Of a stretch of DNA of 64,000 bases, positions 7,494 through 64,000 are shown in pieces. The position numbers were made by a program, and so were the translations under genes. The notes below the pieces were generated by a model, which was given only the letters and a program-made list of their open reading frames with translations, had not been told where the DNA came from and searched no databases. The stretch comes from Octopus bimaculoides (taxonomy: Eukaryota): contig NC_068985.1 in assembly GCF_001194135.2 (NCBI RefSeq), positions 20,920,835 through 20,984,834 of the forward strand. The letters are read 5' to 3'. Numbering within the stretch: the stretch's first letter is position 1; the number at the start of each line of letters is the position of its first letter.

Positions 7494-7729
7494 GTTACCA
7501 ATGAATTTATCAGCAAAATTCATTTTAAAGATACTTATTTGTAATGTGGATGATTTGTCATTAGTTTATAGTGAAACAAAACCAGAGCATGATATAATCT
7601 TTTAAACAAAAGTTACTACAAGTATATTCTAACTTTAACTTATCTCATTTGGAATAGAGAATTACTTCTTCATCCAGATCTCCTTTGGCCTCTTGAATAA
7701 TCATCTATATTTCAAAATAATGAAAAATA

Positions 7730-7900
7730 ATCCTTTCTACTATAGACACAATGTCTGAAATTTGTGGGAGGGAGTTAGTCAATTGCATCAACCCAGTACT
7801 CAACTAGTACTTATTTTATTGACTCCAAAAGGATGAAAGGTAAAGTTGACCACAGCAGAATTTGAGCTCAAATTCTTAAAGACAGATGAAATGCCACCAA
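7730..7900 (-). mobile_element. SINE family B, degenerate
   Basis: CCCAGTACTCAACTAGTACTTATTTT..AAAGGATGAAGGTAAAGTTGACC..AATTTGAGCTC. Confidence 0.75.
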
Positions 7901-14427: not shown

Positions 14428-15059
14428 TTAGTTCTCACAACGCTGCTTTATGGCTGCGAGTCCGAGATGGTCTACCAGCGTCATGCCAGGAAGCTGCACC
14501 ACTTTCATACAATATGCCTCAGAAAACTTCTCAGCATAAAGTGGCAGGACAGGATCCCGGACACCGAGGTACTAATATGTGCTAACCTCCCTAGCATCCA
14601 TACCATCTTGATGCAGTCTCAGCTTCACTGGGCAGGGCACGAAGCTTGCATGTCAGACGATCGATTACCAAAAGGATTGCTCTTTGGCGAGCTGCAAAAG
14701 GGAAAGTGCTCACAAGGCGGCCAGAAGAAGTGCTTTAAGGACATACTGAAAGCCTTCAACATCGACCGTGACACTTGGGAGCAGTCTGCTCTAGACAGAG
14801 AAAGGTGGTGATCAGCTGTCCACAAGGGTGCCAACACATGCGAGACCAATAGGATTGCTGCTGCAGAAGACTGCAGACAAGCCAGGAAGAACAGAGCTAA
14901 CAACTCTGTAGCAGGCGCTACCACTTCCTGTCTACACTGTCAAAGACTCTTTTGGGTGCAAATTGGCCTCACTAGCCATCTGCGGACTCACAAAACAAGC
15001 CCACCCCCACCCCAGGATGACTAGATGGTCTTCGTCACATCGACGGACAAACTACATAC
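14428..15059 (+). mobile_element. 5'-truncated RTE-clade LINE (RT C-terminus, C2H2 finger, 3' end)
   Basis: LLYGCE..FHTICLRKLLSIKWQDRIP..LHWAGH..DRLPKGLLFGEL..CLHC..IGLTSHLRTH; 11-bp TSD ATTAGTATGTA at 14417-14427 and 15060-15070; internal stop at 14809-14811. Confidence 0.9.
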
Positions 15060-15149: not shown

Positions 15150-15600
15150 TAAAAGTTTGCTTAAATATCCAATGTCAATTAGTGATTGTTCTATTTTCTG
15201 TATTTTTTATGTAATGCCTCGTCTGTTCAAAGGAATCGAAATGCTCCCCTTATTAGTGATTTCCCTAGAGTGTTCATGTAAATATATACATTCATTATTT
15301 TTTGTGTAAACTGGCATAATGTATCTATTGTTTTCAGTTTGAATGTTTGTGTCCACAAATGGAATTGAATTAGCATTGTTTTGGGTGTTGAATTTTATTA
15401 GTGGATTTTTCTCCAGGTCTTTCTTTAATTTCTCATCTTTTGATGTGTCCAGTACAATTAGTATATCATCTATATATCTAATGTATATTGTATGTTTGGG
15501 TCTAGATATTATTTTGTTTTCTATTGTTGCTAGGTAGAATGCACATAGCTACTTCAGCTTTTAGTTTCTATAGCTTATCCCTGGAGGAAGTGAAATGATA
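15150..15600 (-). mobile_element. Penelope-like reverse transcriptase relic
   Basis: Stop-free frame 15539 to 15207, absent from the ORF track, reads FYLATIENK..IYIRYIDDILIV..IKFN..IPFVDTNI..VYTK..IYLHEHS. YIDD is at 15465-15476. Confidence 0.75.
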
Positions 15601-29696: not shown

Positions 29697-29867
29697 GGCA
29701 CAGGAGTGGCTGTGTGATAAGTAGCTTGCTTACCAACCACATGGTTCCAGGGTCAGTCCCACTGCGTGGCACCTTGGGCAAGTGTCTTCTACTATAGCCT
29801 TGGGCTGACCAAAGCCTTGTGAGTGGATTTGATAGACGGAAACTGAAAGAAGCCTGTCGTATATATG

Positions 29868-29924
<57 letters not shown>

Positions 29925-30125
29925 GTGTGTGTATATGTTTGTGTGTCTGTGTTTGTCCCCCCAACATCGCTGGTGTTTTTACATCCTTGTAATCTAGCAG
30001 TTCAGCAAAAGAGACCGATAGAATAAGTACTAGGCTTACAAAGAATAAGTCCTGGGGTCGATTTGCTCGACTAAAGGTGGTGCTCCCGCATGGTCACAAT
30101 TAAATGACTGAAACACGTAAAAGAG
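29697..30125 (+). mobile_element. SINE family A, full length
   Basis: tRNA-like head (GGCACAGGAGTGGCTGTGTGATAAG..GGTCAGTCCCAC), body, internal (TA)n and 3' arm ending GACTGAAACACGTAAAAGAG. Confidence 0.9.
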
Positions 30126-39216: not shown

Positions 39217-39329
39217 TAAATAACCTTCTAAATATATTACTGCTCTAATTTATTAGAATGTGCTTCGTTTTCAGATATATGAACTACTGATGATGTGTGT
39301 GTGTGTGTGTGTGTGAATATATGTATATA

Positions 39330-40208
39330 TGTGGTCTGATCAATAAGTAACCAGACTGTTGCCATAGTAACGAAGCTAAAGTACCAGAGTAAAGCAGCCT
39401 GACCTTGAACCCTGCTGTGCATGTGCACTAGGTTTTTAACATTCTAGCTCACTTCCACCGTTTACAGCAGTGCCTGGAAGGAAGGTGTATTGTGTGTAAT
39501 CACCGCATTGACTATGACAGAAAGTTGAGAAGAGAATCTGCATCAAATTTTGCCAAAAGCTTGGCGATACCTGCTCAGAGGCCTACACAAAGTTTTCAAA
39601 ACGTTTCATCATTCTCGACACAATCAAGGAAATCTTGTTCAACTGAAACCCGAATGTCTTTTTGGTCAGTTGAAAGCAGTTTTGGCACAAACTTGGCAGA
39701 CGTGCGTCTCATACCCAAATCTTCAGTGATAATGGACTGAACTGAGCCATAACTAATTTGCACATCCGCTGATAACTCACAGATGGTGATTTGACGATTT
39801 CTCCTCACAGCTGCATGCACATCTGCGATGTTTTTCTCAGTTCTGCTTGTTGCAGGTCTCCCAGAATGTCTGTCAATATCGACATTTTTTGGCCATCTTG
39901 GAAACGTCTGAAACACTCGTACACTTGTGTGCGGCTCATACACTCCTCTCCATACACTTTCTGCAACTTTGTGTAGGCCTCTGAGCAGGCATCACCATGA
40001 CAACTTTCTCTGTCATGGTCAATGTGTTGATCACGCGCTACACACCTTCCTTCCAAGCACTGCTGTAAACAGCGCGAGCTAGAAAGGTAAAACTTAGTGT
40101 GCATACACAGCAGAGGTCAAGGTCAATTTGTGCCAAGCAGCTTTATTCTGCGTACTTCAGCTTCGTTACTATGGCAACAGTTCAGATACTTATTGATCAG
40201 AGCTCTTA
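39330..40208. mobile_element. Mariner derivative made of two 5' ends in inverted orientation
   Basis: Both ends carry the TIR (TCTGATCAATAAGTA) plus about 190 bp of leader and a start ATG. The + arm encodes ICIKFCQKLGDTCSEAYTK. The - arm encodes CSEAYTKLQKVYGEECMSRTQVYE..GRPATS..LGMRRTSAKFVPKLLS..ENDETF. Confidence 0.85.
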
Positions 40209-41066
40209 TAATGTATGTATGTGTTTATATGTGTCTGTGAGTATGTTTGTATAAGTGTATTATCGTGTATGAGTGTGTTTATGTATGTCTGTGTGTGGCA
40301 TGTATTGAAACAGTAGCAATAACATACATATATAAATGTAAATTTTTTTTTTAATAAGTCATTATTATTGCTGATGAAATGAATTTTCAAACTTTTAACC
40401 AAACGTTTTTTGTTTTGTAAACCTGCATTTTGAAAATTAAGAAAACTGCAAATATTAAAAGCCTGAACAAGTAGTACTGGCTGAGAATCCAGCAAATAAA
40501 TCTGGTCCTTTGCTCAGTCAAATGCAGGGGTTTAATTAAGACTCAAGTTGACATACATATTATTGTATTATGTGGTCATAGTTTGTTGGTTAAGAGCATT
40601 GAAACCCTGCATAAAATAAGGATTCATAAGCTTAATCACAGCAGATTTACATAGAAATTTGGTATATATGACCCTTTTCTATGAATGTAGTTCAAATCAT
40701 TCATAACAAATATTGGAATAATTCGATGCTCTTTATTCCACTGTATGAAATATTCCTATATTACATTTTGCCGACACAAAACATCATTAGTTTTGTTACA
40801 TTCTATTGCTTTTACTATACAAATGACGCAAAATGGAAAGTCAAAAATAATTTTGTTACTAATGATGGTTTATGTAATTATACATGTGTATTTGTATTGT
40901 GAAAACATACTGTATTCTAGTGTAGTGATCTGTTTGGATTAGCCATTCTCTAGGACTGGCTTTATATTCCAATAATTTAGTTCCACAAGAACTAAGAAAA
41001 TATATTTTTATTAAAAGAAGCCTGGTGAGCTGTCATCCTATGGTTTAAGTTTGAAAGCCAAAATGA

Positions 41067-45186: not shown

Positions 45187-45415
45187 CTACCTCTTAAGTT
45201 ATTATTGTTATAACAAACACTTCAGATTGATGTTAATTACCCATGTATTTAACTTAAACACTACACCAAGCATTCTGTTATAAGCATTTGGATTAGGTCT
45301 TTGGTTTGAGAGTACATTTCACCTTTCCTCTCACCTTTCCTCTTGGAGGCCCTATAAAGAATCATAGACCATTTGTTCCTGTTTAAGCAATAAAACAATA
45401 TCTTTTAAACATATA

Positions 45416-45632
45416 CGAGGGAGTGCTGAAAAGTTCTTGGCATTAGGTAAAAGAAAATGCAGAAGGATCAATTAATTACGATTTTATTCAACATGTTCCC
45501 CTCTCAGATTCACACACCTATTGCAGCAGTCTTTCAGTTTTCCTAAGCCCTGTAAAATAACTCAGAAGGTTGGGCTTCCAACCAGGCCTTTCACGACACC
45601 CTTAAAACCAGGAACTTTTCAGTACCCCTTCA
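45416..45632. mobile_element. Tc1/mariner-type MITE
   Basis: TIRs CGAGGGAGTGCTGAAAAGTTC / GAACTTTTCAGTACCCCTTCA, preceded by TA; an inverted partial copy lies at about 46157-46240. Confidence 0.8.
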
Positions 45633-45809
45633 TGTATGTATATATAATTAAAAAGTCTCTATCTGATCTGATATAAACGAAATTGTTACAAACACACATA
45701 TGGACGCACATACTTACATATAAGCATGAACACATAAGTGCGTGCACACATATGAGCGTGCACACATACGAGCTTGCACACACTCACATGCTCATACCAA
45801 ACAGTTTCG

Positions 45810-46042
45810 AAACAACGCCAGATCATATATTCAAAATAAATGGAAGTGGAGAGACAAGTTACTGAAGAGATTGCAAGAGTGCAATGAAATAATTTAACAA
45901 AAAACTATATAAATTAATAAAGGACTGAACCAGTGCGTGTGTTTATTACCGGCATAATGCCTCTCCCAAGGTTTAATTGTATTTCTTTCAACACACGTAT
46001 CCACATCAAGAATCTTGCACACGAAATACACATACGAAATAT
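45810..46042 (+). mobile_element. Short young repeat (putative PLE pseudo-LTR fragment)
   Basis: Identical by eye over 177 bp to 63678-63854; reverse complement of 63303-63523 with 1 mismatch; ends in a (TA)n/(TACA)n tract. Confidence 0.75.
45858..45898 (+). ncRNA. Candidate minimal type I hammerhead ribozyme
   Basis: GTTA-CTGAAGA-G-ATTGCA-AGAG-TGCAAT-GAAA-T-A-ATT-TAAC: intact CUGANGA and GAAA, 6-bp stem II, 4-bp stem I, AUU site. One extra G before stem II and a very short stem III. Confidence 0.45.
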
Positions 46043-46098: not shown

Positions 46099-46785
46099 CA
46101 TCATCATCCTCATTTAACGCCCACCAATGATGATGATGATGATGATATACATACATAAGGAGGTGCTAAAAAGTTCCTGGCTGTAAGGGTATCATGAAAC
46201 GCCTGGTTGGAAGCCCAACCAACCTTCTAAGTTCTTTTACATATACATACTGCAGATAATAAAATTTTATTAAATGCTATATCTCCATTTTCTTACTGTC
46301 TTTTGAATGATTATAAACCATGGTTTATATATAAACCTATTGTTTTATGAATATTATTAGGTATTGAACCAGTAACTCATTGGATGATACCATCCCTTAA
46401 TGAGGCTCATTTAACCTCTAATTGAATTCATATATATATATATATATAAACACATCCCAACTACAAACCATTGCCAATTAGTTACTCATCTGTGGTAAAG
46501 TGCCCTTAATTATAAGTTCTTGTTTCTGTTTATTGGTTTATTATGGCTATTTCTGGCTTCATAAAATGATTATATAAATAGTCAATTCTTAGAAATATTA
46601 TATGAGTGTTGTTACAAACTACAAAATTAATCAATTAGTGATAACAAAAGAGAGAGAAAAAGTAATACTAAAAAGCATTCAGTTTCTCTGTGGTTTACCA
46701 CCACCAAAACTTTGTTACCACTTGTTTTGAAATGTGACAGCTGTTAAACCAATTGTAGATTATAGGCTGTACTTTCATATACATA

Positions 46786-47840: not shown

Positions 47841-49599
47841 TAGATATTTTACTGCATTTATTTTAATCTGCAAAATTAGATAAGTTACTTGCTTAATTTG
47901 ACAATAAAATATTAGAGAGAGCATCTAGCCATAAACACGTTTCATGCTAATGAATGAGATAGTAAATATAAGCAGCATTCTTTCTATCTTTTAATGAGCT
48001 GCATTTGTTAAATAAAACTTTTCTTGTAATATAAATTACATCACTTTATATTACCATTTTTTTGTTGTTTCCATTTTCTTACTTCATTTTTCAATGTATG
48101 GCTATTTTCTAAACCAAATAATTCAGAGATTCTATTTTTATCAGAAACTTTTTCACCTTAATTTCCTCAAAAAATCATCTGCTCTCTTTATTGCTCCCAG
48201 ACCTCTTCAATCTTACCCAACACTCATCACTAAACTTCCTGTCTTGCATTAACACAGACAAATCTTCTGATCATTTTTCTTACTTTAAATCTATCTTCCA
48301 CTTCCATAGTAGCCATATTCAACAAATCTTCTGCCTTCTTGACCTTAGCAAATATATAGACCCAAATAGCATCCAACAGCTATCTTCACATAATGTACAA
48401 CATATTCACTACCTATTCTAACCAAAGTATTTGATTTCTCTTTGTGTCTGTGTGATTGTGTGTGTGTGTGTGTGGATAGATAGATAGATGCAAATCATGA
48501 TTTTTTTCAGATGTAAGCATATATATTTATCTTTCAAATAAAGTTTATCTATCTCTAAAAGAAGATAAATTCTAAGACCTTGGAATTAACGGGATGATAG
48601 ATTATGAGAAAGCTAAATTTGGATTAACTGAAAATGATCTGAAATAATTGGCCACACAATCATGTTAATGAGGAAAATATTTCATGAATGTTTCTTGATT
48701 TCTGATCAAGATGCAAAGCAAAAATGCATTTATCAACATAGAATATTTATTAGAAAATACATTTTTCAACTAAAGTTCAACTTTACAGAAAGTTTTTCAT
48801 CTGAAGAACTGATCTTAGTTAGAAAAACAAGTACAATATTTAAAAATATTATCATAAAAAATAACACCTGCTAAAAAAATAATTTTCTGTCATAGATACT
48901 AATTCATCCAAAGAAAACCAAATATAAGTTTGGTAAGCATCATGCTGCTAAACTGTCTGTAATCCTCACTTAGAGAAAATTGATACTATTTTCTGCTAGT
49001 TGAGTATCATGTTTCTGAGGTTTGTCATGAAGCAGCCAATCTTAGAAATTGTAGAAATCATGTTTCTGTCAGGTTATTTTTAAAAGAAACAAATGAGGAC
49101 TCTCTTCAGAAGTAAGATATATAGAAATAAAGTAAAATTTCTAGATCTCATTTAGCTCTCAGAAAAATTGTTTTAATATAAATTCAGGTAAATTTTAATA
49201 TTCAATTTTATTCTATTAATTAGTTCCCTCCTTTTGTCATAAAGGTCATCAAGTTATTCAGAATGAGAGTGGTTTGATATCAATGTATCTTCAGACTGAT
49301 GAATACATTTTTGTACATTTGAAACTTAATTCAATGTGTTCTTGAATTACTGATTTGTCTCTGTGGATGAAAGATAGCAAACGTGTACTGCAACAATTAA
49401 TAAAATCCCCAGGAATTATTTACATCTAAAATCTATCTAAATAGAAAATAGTATAGTTGATTGAAGATATATGAGTGTATGTTTACTTAATATACACTAA
49501 GTAATCTTTTCCTTTGATACATATACTACCTTTTTTTTTTTTTTTTTTTTGCAAGAAGATTATATTAACTATTTTGTGGATTTTACATTATTTTTTATC

Positions 49600-49787
49600 T
49601 TTTATGCATTTCAGTCATTAGACTGCAGCCATACTGAGCTTAAAGTTTTAGTCAAATGAATCGACCCCAGTACTATTTTTTTTTAAACCTGGTATATATT
49701 CTATTGGTCTTTTGCTGAACCACTAAGTTATGGGGATGTAAACACACCAACACTGGTTGTCAAATGGTGATGGGGTGACAAATACAA

Positions 49788-49846
<59 letters not shown>

Positions 49847-50010
49847 CACACACAACAGGCTTCTTTCAGTTTTTGTCTACCAAATCCACTCACAAGGCTT
49901 TGGTTGGCCTGAAGCTATAGTAGAAAACACTTGCCCAAGGTGTCACACAGTAGGACTGAACCTGGAACCACATGATTGGGAAGCAAGCTTCTTACTACAC
50001 AACCACTCCT
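49600..50010 (-). mobile_element. SINE family A, full length
   Basis: Reverse complement of 29697-30125, including the internal (CA)/(TA) tract. Confidence 0.88.
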
Positions 50011-50769
50011 GAATACTTTTACTAAAATATTATTGAAACATTAATTTTAAAAAATTATTCACAATGATCAAGAGTCTTTCCTAGTGACATAACATACATA
50101 ACATAGCTAAAACATCTACCCAGAAAATATTTCATGCCAGATTCTATAAGAAGCTCAAATAAATTCCACAATGGTGTACTACTCCTACATTTAGGGCAGT
50201 GCTGCTGCTACACACACAAATCTCTTAGGCTGTATCCAAAAGAACATCATCTAGATGGTTAGTAATGACTTATTTCTCTATATCCTACAATTATTATCTC
50301 ATGAATGTTTCTTCTCTATCTTTTCTATCAGTACTGCAACAAATCCCTCACAAAGGCCTTCCAAAAATACATGCTTTTTATCACCCCTGCTGAACCTTTT
50401 CAACACCCATTCTGTGGTTCAACTTCACCAATCTTAACTACAGATATAGGCCTAAACATGTGCAAACTTGAACCTTTTAGGTTCAAGATATATCTCATGG
50501 ATGCTTTAGAATGCATCATCAGCAATGTTTCTGGGGTCATAGGAGGACTATTGAGTCTTTCAACATCAGACCCCCTTGCCCAGTTGATCAAGACCCAGCT
50601 TAATCCTTTACCTTTTTAACAGGCCATATCTGACCCAAATATGCTACCTCATTTATGTTCTAGCAGGCAGATCCAGCCTATCATACCTACCCCTCAATGC
50701 CATTCTAAATATATAGCCACATCAGCAAAATTTCAAAGCTACAATATAATGCGTGATTAATTAAAAACA

Positions 50770-51278
50770 GCGGAGCGCTAACAGCACCACCCGAGCAGGA
50801 TCATTGCTAGAGCAGCTGTCTGGCTTCCATGCAGGTGGCATGTAAAAAGCACCATTTGGGCGTGATCATTACCTGCGTTGCCTTACTGGCACTTGTGCCG
50901 GTGGCACATGAACAAAACATTCGAGCGAGGTCGTTGTCAGTGCTGCTGGACTGACTCCTGTGCAGATGGCACATAAAAAAACACCATTTGAACGTGGCCA
51001 TTGCCAGTATCCCCTGACTGGCCCTCGTGCCGGTGGCACGTAAAAGCACCCACTACACTCTCGGAGTGGTTGGCGTTAGGAAGGGAATCCAGCTGTAGAA
51101 ACTCTGCCAGGTCAGATTGGAGCCTAGTGCAGCCATCTGGTTCACCAGTCCTCAGTCAAATCATCCAACCCATGNNNNNNNNNNAGGTCAGATTGGAGCC
51201 TAGTGCAGCCATCTGGTTCACCAGTCCTCAGTCAAATCATCCAACCCATGGCACTGGCATGGAAAGCAGACGTTAAAC

Positions 51279-59080: not shown

Positions 59081-60333
59081 TTGGGTAATCCCATAAATAA
59101 TGCAATCTTTTTTCAGTTGCATGAACTAAAAGTCAGAGGAGCACAGGATAAACTACCTGCATCAAATTGCTATAAAAGCAGATAGTAATTTTACCTTGTA
59201 TTTATTCTTAGTGCAAGTTTTGAATAGTGCAGTTCGATTTTAACAGTTATTTTTTCAAAGCTATAATGGAAGTGACAAAGGAGCATATTAAGCATATTTT
59301 GCTTTATGAGTTCAATAACGGTAACAACGCAATGGAAAGTGCAAGGAATATTAATGCAGTATATGAGGATCGGACAGTAAGTGTAAGCCAGTGCCAATAA
59401 AGGTTCCAGAAATTATGAGCCAGAAACTACAGCCTAGAAGACAAGCTTCGTCCTGGAAGATCTGTAGAGCTCGACGAGGCTGTTCTGCAAACGCTGGTGG
59501 AACAAAATCTCATCGTAAATGTTGAGGAACTAGTAGAGAAGCTTGGATTTGGTCATTCAACCATTCATCACATGCCCTCAGAAAAGTCAGCAAATTTTCC
59601 ATGTCTAATCGAGCATAGAGAGTGAATGTGTGTCCTTTGCTGTCACATCTCACGAATGAACCTTATTTGGCCCAAATAGTGACTGGTGACGAGTAGTGGA
59701 TTCTCTATAAAAATGTCAAGTGCCAAAGACAGTGGTAGGGAATGGAGAAACACCAGCACCCCAGGCTAAAGAAGATCTTCACCCATGTAAGGTGTTGTTA
59801 TTTGTTCGGTGGGATATGAAAGGTTTAGTCCACTTTGAACTTTTAAACCCAAACTAAACGATAACAAAGAAGATCTACTGCAAACAGCTTGAGCAGCTTA
59901 AGTCAGTGCTAGAAGAAAAACAACCATCTTTGGTTTCAAGACAAAAGGTGTTCTTCCATCAGGATAATGCTCGGCCACATACAGTGAGGATAACATTCCA
60001 AAGGCTTGAGCAGTTTGAATGGGAAACGGTGCTCCATCCATCATATTCGCCAGACATTGCCATATCTAATTATCATTTACTACGCAGTCTTCAAAATCAT
60101 TTGGACAGAAAAAAACATGAATTCTGTGGACGAGGTCAGAACAGTACTGGAGGAGTATTTTTCGTCACAGACAAGTAAATTTTGGAAGAGGGGCCTTGCA
60201 AGTCTAAAAGATAGATGGAAGAGCATTGTAGAAATTGAAGGAGAGTATATTTTAGATTAAAAAGAACTTTGTTTATCTTAATTTTGAAAAATAAAAGAAG
60301 TATAAAAATAGCATTATTTATGGGATGATCCAA
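59081..60333 (+). mobile_element. Near full-length mariner (DD34D) transposon, inactivated
   Basis: TIRs TTGGGTAATCCCATAAATAATGC / GCATTATTTATGGGATGATCCAA flanked by TA. Transposase runs from ATG 59266 to TAA 60260 with IVTGDE, HQDNARPH and YSPDIA motifs; stops, frameshifts and an internal deletion. Confidence 0.93.
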
Positions 60334-61455: not shown

Positions 61456-61581
61456 GTACTTTGTTCTTACATGCACACAGGTGAGTGTGCAAAGCTAAAT
61501 AAGTACTAATATTTATACTAGCATTATACTTTTATTACTCATGCACACAAATACAAATATACAGGTCACTAGCTGACTAAT
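61456..61581. repeat. 126-bp segment duplicated in inverted orientation at 63551-63676
   Basis: Reverse-complement match with 1 mismatch (ATGCAC vs ACGCAC). Confidence 0.95.
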
Positions 61582-62515: not shown

Positions 62516-62742
62516 TTTACTCTTATGTTTTTACTTGTTTCAGTCATTTGACTGTGGCCATGCTGGAGCATCGCCTTTAGTCGAACAAATCAACCCCAGG
62601 ACTTATTCTTTGTGAGCCTAGTACTTATTCTATCGGTCTCTTTTGCCGAACCGCTAATTTACGGGGGACGTACACACCAGCATCGATTGTCAAGTGACGT
62701 TGGGGGGACAAACACAGACACACATACATATACACACACACA

Positions 62743-62789
<47 letters not shown>

Positions 62790-62884
62790 GACGGGCTTCT
62801 TTCAGTTTCCGTCTACCAAATCCACTCACAAGGCTTTGGTCAGCCTGAGGCTATAATAGAAGACACTTGCCCAAGGTGCCACGC
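62516..62884 (-). mobile_element. SINE family A, 5'-truncated, well preserved
   Basis: TTTCAGTCATTTGACTGTGGCCATGCTGGAGC..GACACTTGCCCAAGGTGCCACGCA. Confidence 0.9.
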
Positions 62885-62975
62885 ATGTGATATTCATATC
62901 AGATGAACATTTGACCTCTACAACTGGATATTTTCAAAACAATAATTAATTTATGTCAATATTTAATTTTTATTT

Positions 62976-63117
62976 CTAAGTTCAAATTCTGCCGAGGTCG
63001 ACTTTGTCCTTTATTCTTTCAGAGTCGATAAATTAAGTACCAGGTGCGTACTGGGGTCGATCTAATCAACTAGCCCCCTCCCCCAAAATTTCGGGCCTTG
63101 TGCCTAGAGTAGGAAAG
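62976..63117 (+). mobile_element. SINE family B, 5'-truncated
   Basis: TCTAAGTTCAAATTCTGCCGAGGTCGAC..GGCCTTGTGCCTAGAGTAGGAAAG; AATATTTAATT repeated on both flanks. Confidence 0.85.
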
Positions 63118-63293
63118 AATATTTAATTACTATGCTATTTTGATTCGACATGACATTTCGTCTTTCATTTTAAAACACTTTAAAATCTCTCAACCTCTAA
63201 ATCTACTTGCTTGCCTTCCATCTCTTTTATTCTACTTCTTCCAATCAAATACAAATTTCTAACCCTGCCATACATTATAAAGAAATGATTATC

Positions 63294-63862
63294 TTCTCTG
63301 TAATATTTCGTATGTGTATTTCGTGTGCAAGATTCTTGATGTGGATACGTGTGTTGAAAGAAATACAATTAAACCTTAGGAGAGGCATTATGCCGGTAAT
63401 AAACACACGCACTGGTTCAGTCCTTTATTAATTTATATAGTTTTTTGTTAAATTATTTCATTGCACTCTTGCAATCTCTTCAGTAACTTGTCTCTCCACT
63501 TCCATTTATTTTGAATATATGATTTGGTATTCTTTCTACTAATATATATCATTAGTCAGCTAGTGACCTGTATATTTGTATTTGTGTGCGTGAGTAATAA
63601 AAGTATAATGCTAGTATAAATATTAGTACTTATTTAGCTTTGCACACTCACCTGTGTGCATGTAAGAACAAAGTACAAAACAACGCCAGATCATATATTC
63701 AAAATAAATGGAAGTGGAGAGACAAGTTACTGAAGAGATTGCAAGAGTGCAATGAAATAATTTAACAAAAAACTATATAAATTAATAAAGGACTGAACCA
63801 GTGCGTGTGTTTATTACCGGCATAATGCCTCTCCCAAGGTTTAATTGTATTTCTCTGTAATA
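63294..63862. mobile_element. Composite bidirectional insertion: inverted arm, captured local DNA, forward arm, with 12-bp flanking direct repeat
   Basis: TTCTCTGTAATA at 63294-63305 and 63851-63862; arms at 63303-63523 (-) and 63678-63854 (+); filler at 63551-63676. Confidence 0.85.
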
Positions 63863-64000
63863 ACTACCCACTAAGGAATGACATATGTATCTCTTGCTTC
63901 TTGTACCATACCTACAACTCTGTCCCGTCGCCATGTTACTATCTGGCATATAAATGAATACCTACACTCACCAATCTCCAAACACATCATGATCATTGTC

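Follow-up and report, generated by a model that had tools for sequence, protein, structure and literature searches.

A recent head-to-head insertion of a hammerhead-bearing unit with captured host DNA, in keeping with the biology of Penelope-like elements

How did two inward-facing copies of a hammerhead-bearing sequence, with nearby host DNA between them and a 12-bp duplication outside, come to form a single insert of 545 bp at positions 63294-63862? The window, by which we mean the whole 64-kb stretch of DNA that was analysed, belongs to a repeat-rich eukaryotic scaffold of 67% A+T and is broken by seven runs of N. Many interspersed repeats at 70-85% identity lie across it, and ORF fragments of the mariner-like and LINE-like kinds are present. 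Above 95% identity, the only repeats in the window are the modules of this structure and an exact duplication of 66 bp on either side of a 10-N gap (51175-51184), the latter a clear assembly artefact. That duplication aside, the modules are alone at this level of identity and so form a sharp contrast with the background of old repeats. The insertion is fresh and compact, with a pseudo-LTR-like hammerhead unit arranged head to head around captured host DNA; it belongs to the known biology of Penelope-like elements (PLEs) and represents no new element type or mechanism. The account that we favour, and hold to be probable without being secure, is a recent single insertion in which PLE machinery acted in trans on an ORF-less hammerhead RNA of ~233 nt and both target strands were primed.

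The anatomy of the locus was checked by BLASTN of 63200-64000 against the window, by base-by-base comparison and with a repeat finder. The original prediction had described three modules between identical 12-bp direct repeats, namely a 221-bp minus-strand arm with one mismatch, a 126-bp inverted copy of local DNA and a 177-bp plus-strand arm identical to its counterpart elsewhere in the window, with the repeats overlapping the arm ends by 3 and 4 nt, and each of these was confirmed. The target-site duplication (TSD), TTCTCTGTAATA, occupies 63294-63305 on the left, where its last 3 nt (ATA) are shared with the element, and 63851-63862 on the right, where the right arm reaches 4 nt into it (TTCT); these 3 and 4 nt are the microhomology of the outer junctions. 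The pair is exact over 12 bp, no other direct repeat within 63000-64000 reaches 12 nt, and the chance of finding such a repeat at most 5 nt from both boundaries is ~3e-5 for a non-repetitive 12-mer. The TSD is 75% A+T and the site 70% A+T, values that are not informative about an AT preference since the window itself stands at 67%.

The left arm (63303-63523, minus strand) is the reverse complement of 45822-46042, with a single mismatch in 221 nt (A63378 against G45967), and its 3' end faces outward, to the left. The right arm (63678-63854, plus strand) equals 45810-45986 at 177 of 177 positions, and its 3' end also faces outward, to the right. The two copies are in inverted orientation with their 5' ends inward and, over 177 nt, the inverted arms are 97% complementary. 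The left arm alone carries a tail (63303-63358, minus strand), a 3' extension of 56 nt that corresponds to 45987-46042 and is 70% A+C; the right arm is without it. Beyond its inner end, the left arm runs on weakly for 13 bases (63524-63536 against 45821-45809, 9 of 13 matching, p ~0.002), and this degraded continuation places the ends of both arms at the same 5' position, 45809/45810, to within 1 nt.

Since the arms stop at the same 5' base, a discrete unit of ~233 nt without an ORF is implied. Its reference copy (45810-46042, plus strand), with a hammerhead at 45858-45898, is the probable donor or a sibling, and there a (TA)n tract follows directly on the 3' end of the unit, from 46043 onward. 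A shared 5' end, together with a distal 3' end at a (TA)n flank, points to discrete ends and not to arbitrary breakpoints. The unit occupies 0.4% of the window. Neither the unit nor the whole insert holds an ORF of more than 74 aa, and none of their ORFs has similarity to a reverse transcriptase (RT) or an endonuclease (EN).

Between the arms lie 27 nt of filler next to the left arm (63524-63550), a module of captured host DNA (63551-63676, minus strand) and a single untemplated A (63677) at the boundary of that module with the right arm. The captured module is an inverted copy of 61456-61581 (plus strand), a donor locus 1.7 kb upstream of the insertion site, with one mismatch in 126 nt, at 63590. 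Neither the element nor its flanks are related to it; a reading of the module as the upstream region of the element was rejected on alignment scores that were no better than those of shuffled sequence. Within the filler, 63537-63549 forms an inverted match, at 12 of 13 positions, to 63616-63628 inside the captured module, which is a weak lead, and no other source of the filler was found in the window, where exact matches were limited to chance-level 10-12-mers. The inner junctions are marked by filler or by one extra base instead of microhomology. Across both arms the copies show one mismatch in 398 nt, a near-identity that makes the event recent and bears out the very recent date that had been proposed for it.

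All three copies of the unit carry the same hammerhead motif, which is of the minimal type-I kind. The motif of the left arm (63447-63487, minus strand) is identical to 45858-45898, and the motif of the right arm (63726-63766, plus strand) lies 238 nt from this opposite-strand partner. It reads GUUA CUGAAGA G AUUGCA AGAG UGCAAU GAAA UAA UU/UAAC, with cleavage predicted at the slash, after U45894. All hammerhead core nucleotides are present, a bulged base separates A9 from helix II, helix II has 6 bp and helix I has 4 bp, and the minimum-free-energy folds of 45850-45912 and of the whole unit form exactly helices I and II. At the usually conserved G10.1-C11.1 position the motif has an A-U pair.

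We searched the window with a descriptor composed of CUGANGA, a bulge of 0-1 nt, the helix II hairpin, GAAA, 0-6 nt, U, H (not G) and helix I. In the 64 kb its matches were confined to the three copies, at 45862(+), 63730(+) and 63483(-). By composition-matched simulation, the expectation from chance is 0.0013 matches per window if stems have 4 bp or more and 0.013 if they have 3 bp or more, figures that refer to a descriptor modelled on the PLE minimal hammerheads of PMC4209133 and written after the motif had been seen. Rfam returned no hammerhead, either at gathering thresholds across the whole window or at E values up to 10 at both loci. Rfam matches to MIR7533 and MIR2630 (E ~1e-15, far under the gathering scores) were rejected; they reflect the long inverted repeat and are not miRNAs. 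The fold stability of the tail and of the whole unit equalled that of shuffled sequence, and a special stem-loop was unsupported beyond a 9-bp GU/AC helix.

The minimal hammerheads of PLEs are without a real helix III, carry a bulge after A9, a long helix II and a short helix I, and cleave poorly, as dimers, even if canonical (PMC4209133). Cervera and de la Pena (2014) described such hammerheads in pairs on opposite strands, 100-700 bp apart (PMC4209133). The motif examined here resembles these metazoan counterparts in its type-I topology, its CUGANGA...GAAA core, its 6-bp helix II and 4-bp helix I, and its one-pair helix III with a near-palindromic AUAAU (PMC4209133). The resemblance extends to the opposite-strand pair, at 238 nt here against 100-700 bp, and to the occurrence of the known motifs mostly as isolated truncated copies (PMC4209133). 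It differs from them in that A-U replaces G10.1-C11.1. We accept the presence of a PLE-type minimal hammerhead motif in all three copies, with ribozyme activity as a prediction only.

Published PLE insertions provide the closest comparison to the locus as a whole. In Adineta vaga, PLEs (Pen2a_Av and pLTR-captured sequences) have an inverted pseudo-LTR beside a direct one, and PLE inverted repeats carry a 31-bp tail on one of the two, with TSDs of 8-10 bp (PMC3846280). Craig et al. (2021) reported PLE copies that are inverted, 5'-truncated and next to the 5' end, together with a tail of 30-40 bp on one side and a target bias towards (TA)n, and cautioned that such structures disturb short-read assemblies (PMC8557442). 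Frangieh et al. (2024) found that a purified PLE protein (Poseidon PAc) cleaves and extends both strands in vitro, with AT-rich targets preferred, and that reverse transcription starts at two adjacent internal sites, the interval between which is the tail (PMC11167929). In that system RT starts at ORF nt 111-118 and the hammerhead cut falls 26 nt inside it, which places the start ~85-92 nt past the cut (PMC11167929).

The locus shares with insertions of endonuclease-containing PLEs the head-to-head 5'-truncated copies with 3' ends outward, the tail at one end, a short TSD, a hammerhead in the repeated module, the capture of unrelated DNA between pseudo-LTRs and an AT-rich target. It also resembles the in vitro reaction in the apparent priming of both strands and in an apparent RT start ~90 nt past the cut (here 92). 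It is 92 nt from the predicted cut to the end of the right arm, at 45986, and another 56 nt to that of the left arm; each arm looks as though it began at a different one of the two alternative RT start sites. That PLEs insert as inverted copies with minimal hammerheads had been part of the original prediction, and it is a published signature (PMC3846280, PMC8557442, PMC4209133). The hammerhead-bearing unit that it named is upheld by the minimal type-I motif, which occurs only in the three copies against an expectation of ~0.0013, with Rfam negative. Its bidirectional priming, given the results with PLE protein, is established PLE behaviour and not an ad hoc assumption (PMC11167929): the layout and the priming of both strands in vitro speak for it. 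Taken as a whole, the earlier interpretation is partly supported and largely in line with known PLE biology.

We infer that an RNA template, a PLE enzyme and a joining step lie behind the insertion. The template RNA would correspond to the 3'-terminal pseudo-LTR module of a PLE, and a GIY-YIG endonuclease would nick both strands of an AT-rich site, 12 bp apart. The 3'-OH of the top strand (...GTAATA) would prime one cDNA from the distal RT start site, unit position 46042, and the 3'-OH of the bottom strand would prime a second from the proximal start at 45986, which lies 92 nt beyond the hammerhead cut site; each 3'-OH end would anneal over 3-4 nt. Both cDNAs would run to the template's 5' end at 45809/45810, which would yield inward-facing copies with outward 3' ends, one of them with the 56-nt tail. 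The cDNA ends would be joined by error-prone, microhomology-using synthesis that copies 126 nt from the locus 1.7 kb away and leaves the 27-nt filler and the one extra A, and fill-in of the staggered nicks would produce the 12-bp duplication.

In other respects the locus is unlike known PLE insertions. Here there is no RT or GIY-YIG ORF between or beside the arms, and the whole insert is only 545 bp. The tail, at 56 nt, exceeds the usual 30-40 nt, and the TSD, at 12 bp, exceeds the 8-10 bp of A. vaga. The locus that supplied the captured DNA is 1.7 kb away, and only 17.3 kb separate the right arm from the nearest sibling copy, to which it is 100% identical. To our knowledge there is no reason for such locality in retrotransposition, whereas DNA-level template switching has one. 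The local origin of the modules and the length of the tail speak against the PLE reading, as do the A-U pair in place of G10.1-C11.1, the negative Rfam result, a tail that folds like its shuffles, the lack of further copies of the unit in the 64-kb window and a gapped, short-read-style scaffold with at least one artefactual duplication. Since the insert has no RT or EN ORF, and the window holds only a decayed RT remnant 30-48 kb away, the insert is not an autonomous PLE; it is at most a non-autonomous or pseudo-LTR-only PLE derivative.

Metazoan non-LTR retrozymes, described by Cervera and de la Pena (2020; PMC7229834) and in a preprint by Li et al. (2026; 10.64898/2026.07.22.740005), have been proposed to be just such non-autonomous derivatives of PLE pseudo-LTRs, moved by PLE enzymes. 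Their defining feature is a head-to-tail tandem array from which circular RNAs arise, and their hammerheads are usually canonical (PMC7229834; 10.64898/2026.07.22.740005). Our unit is like them in being a short (150-450 bp), AT-rich, ORF-less sequence with a type-I hammerhead, and unlike them in the lack of a tandem array, in a hammerhead of the minimal PLE kind and in unit ends that lie away from the cut site. A head-to-tail tandem copy of the unit was absent at both loci. The sequence upstream of 45810 weakly resembles the tail (p ~0.045), which is the only hint of a tandem arrangement.

A further comparison is offered by L1. In the twin priming that Ostertag and Kazazian reportedly described in 2001, both target strands prime cDNA, and the product is said to contain an inverted and a direct segment within one TSD, with microhomology at the junction. 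The two segments reportedly derive from adjacent, non-overlapping parts of the RNA, with the 3' terminus at one end only. The arms at this locus, unlike those segments, span one and the same stretch of 165-177 nt, and each begins at a 3' terminus of the element. Overlapping arms of this kind require two templates or two passes, as with PLE proteins in vitro.

If the structure is real, it offers an unusually clean and very young example of PLE integration, with an intact TSD and the probable donor in view. One genomic event would then mirror the behaviour of the purified PLE protein, in that both strands were primed and a defined 5' end was reached, and one arm would derive from each RT start site, which would explain the enigmatic tail. 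The host DNA trapped at the head-to-head junction would illustrate one way in which PLEs shuffle host sequence. The insertion would serve as a helpful in vivo example of priming on both strands and of how the tail arises.

The strongest rival places the whole event at the level of DNA, as a templated insertion made during break repair or replication restart, either by serial template switching of the MMBIR/FoSTeS type or by polymerase-theta end joining. We consider this unlikely, if still a serious contender. In MMBIR/FoSTeS, short segments of DNA from the vicinity are strung together in either orientation, the junctions show microhomology and a small duplication flanks the product. Applied to this locus, a 3' end at 63305, stalled or broken, would have copied 46045 to 45822, then the filler, 61581 to 61456 and 45810 to 45986 in turn, and would have returned to a point 12 bp upstream of its departure, which would create the flanking duplication; the hammerhead element would have been copied by happenstance. 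The donors are all local (17.3 kb and 1.7 kb) and 99-100% identical, which fits this course equally well. The 3-4 nt of microhomology at both outer junctions are in its favour, as are the filler and extra base at the inner ones, a 13-nt snippet in the filler that resembles a snap-back, the concentration of mismatches in the last 13 nt of the left arm and the lack of further copies of the unit in the window.

The positions of the breakpoints argue the other way. Unlike those of MMBIR/FoSTeS, they fall at the ends of a discrete hammerhead-bearing unit that was used twice. This unit makes up 0.4% of the window and is the sole hammerhead-bearing sequence there, yet it would have been chosen on both occasions and set in the head-to-head arrangement typical of PLEs. 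Two supposedly independent switches both end at 45809/45810. One outer breakpoint is the boundary between the unit and the (TA)n tract, and the other lies 92 nt past the hammerhead cut, at the place of the PLE RT start in vitro (PMC11167929). Under arbitrary template switching, these agreements would all be coincidences.

It is improbable, in our judgement, that the structure arose in assembly, either from contigs that overlapped by 12 bp but were kept apart, the gap between them being closed by a wrong or chimeric path of repeat reads, or from a real PLE-type insertion that was given a false centre. The window does hold seven N gaps and the 66-bp exact duplication around the 10-N gap at 51175-51184, and that duplication aside, its repeats above 95% identity all belong to this structure. 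Tandem and inverted PLE structures are, moreover, a known source of trouble in short-read assemblies (PMC8557442). Against this, 63294-63862 and the adjoining bases are free of N. Junctions with overlaps of 0-4 nt are impossible by k-mer graph joins and need reads that physically span them, and an artefact would have no reason to reproduce several independent PLE signatures, among them the tail, the TSD and the shared 5' end.

Also quite improbable is a version of reverse transcription in which all three modules derive from one local plus-strand host transcript. A check of polarity showed that the left half could have had its entire top strand templated by one plus-strand molecule with both 45822-46042 and 61456-61581. 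After copying 46042 to 45822, the cDNA of the top strand could have jumped, on the same RNA, to 61581 and on to 61456. A PLE enzyme would have taken up the pseudo-LTR-like unit as part of a transcript still being made, its integration would have been co-transcriptional and within 18 kb, and intronic RNA would have been captured on the way. If true, this would amount to local hopping by a retroelement, and to an in vivo snapshot, within one event, of both alternative RT starts, which have so far been seen in vitro only.

A foldback-type or MITE-like DNA transposon moved by a transposase, to which the long terminal inverted repeats (177 nt, 97% complementary) within a 12-bp direct repeat might point, is hardly credible and was rejected on its unequal arms (221-234 nt against 177 nt) and its termini, which are not mutual inverted copies and have a tail on one side only, and the reading also sits badly with a spacer that is a fresh copy of neighbouring DNA and a solo copy at 45.8 kb that is one-armed. 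We know of no DNA-transposon superfamily for which a 12-bp TSD is typical.

Searches for relatives of the unit were made inside and outside the window. No further copies of the unit or of the captured module, diverged ones included, were found in the 64 kb beyond low-complexity matches. No paralogous empty site was found in the window, where the neighbouring interspersed repeat stops ~170 bp before the insertion point. In collections that do not hold this genome, exact look-up gave no record either for ORFs across the left junction and the right one or for two ORFs from transposable elements. Two scans of metagenome contigs for members of the family gave nothing relevant, with 0 matches to an exact 28-mer. 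Five degenerate-core matches in metagenome contigs were rejected as chance, as all were without helix II. If the structure is real, it points to a short hammerhead unit without an ORF, one that may still move within this genome.

For an insertion by PLE machinery in trans, the reading that we prefer, the window offers one sequence as context only, a decayed PLE-type RT remnant at 15210-15548 (minus strand). It is a stop-free segment with the motif RYIDDILIV and a weak match to RVT_1 (E 0.005), it lies 30-48 kb from the copies of the unit with no physical link to them, and it is the only PLE-type RT in the window. A word-indexed protein search with the remnant gave no matches; an exhaustive HMMER search gave 88 relatives. 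The longer relatives that were scanned carried RVT_1, one relative had a weak Pfam GIY-YIG match downstream, and, among the relatives, eight had the PLE endonuclease signature VYxIxCxxCxxxYIGQT or a close variant of it. The remnant, together with relatives in which a GIY-YIG motif follows RVT_1, shows that PLEs have lived in this genome.

Within the young 545-bp insertion, the 27-nt central filler at the inner end of its left arm (63524-63550) contains a 13-nt segment, 63537-63549, that is an inverted copy at 12 of 13 positions of 63616-63628, which lies within the captured module of neighboring DNA between the two arms. Such an inverted match would be expected of snap-back synthesis in end joining, but as a departure from chance it is borderline. 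The region 63393-63821 is also matched by the Rfam plant miRNA models MIR7533 and MIR2630 with E-values of about 1e-15 and scores far under the gathering scores, matches that arise because the insert forms a 177-bp hairpin. If transcribed, this hairpin could still yield double-stranded RNA.

At 45.8 kb, the plus-strand copy of the hammerhead-bearing repeat unit is enclosed, together with its microsatellites, by inverted repeats of about 93 nt that are 87% complementary (45551-45643 and 46145-46241; also 45406-45445) and whose ends point outward from the center. They may represent terminal repeats of mariner-like type, or else an inverted duplication of greater age. The AC-rich sequence directly upstream of this copy (45690-45809) bears a weak likeness to the 3' tail of the unit, 45987-46042 (local alignment, p ~0.045), and may be the remnant of an older partial tandem copy.

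A 66-bp exact repeat (51109-51174 and 51185-51250) lies on either side of the 10-N gap at 51175-51184. This is a contig overlap left unresolved, an assembly artifact, and it demonstrates that false duplications do occur in the scaffold.

A decayed Penelope-type reverse transcriptase remnant with the motif RYIDDILIV is present on the minus strand at 15210-15548; in its relatives, RVT_1 is accompanied by a GIY-YIG motif. The remnant is adjoined by a LINE-like reverse transcriptase C-terminal ORF on the plus strand (14467-14811), which may have truncated it.

Two mariner-like transposase fragments were identified, at 39596-40104 (minus strand) and 59906-60178 (plus strand), one of which has a weak Transposase_1 match; the former is held within an inverted repeat (39326-39527 and 40001-40210). 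Short interspersed repeats of several families, at 70-85% identity, occur throughout the window, as exemplified by the copies at 29701-30124, 49598-50011 and 62529-62885, and by a family of at least nine copies represented at 7725-7868. Upstream of the insertion, one short interspersed repeat copy stops about 170 bp short of the site.
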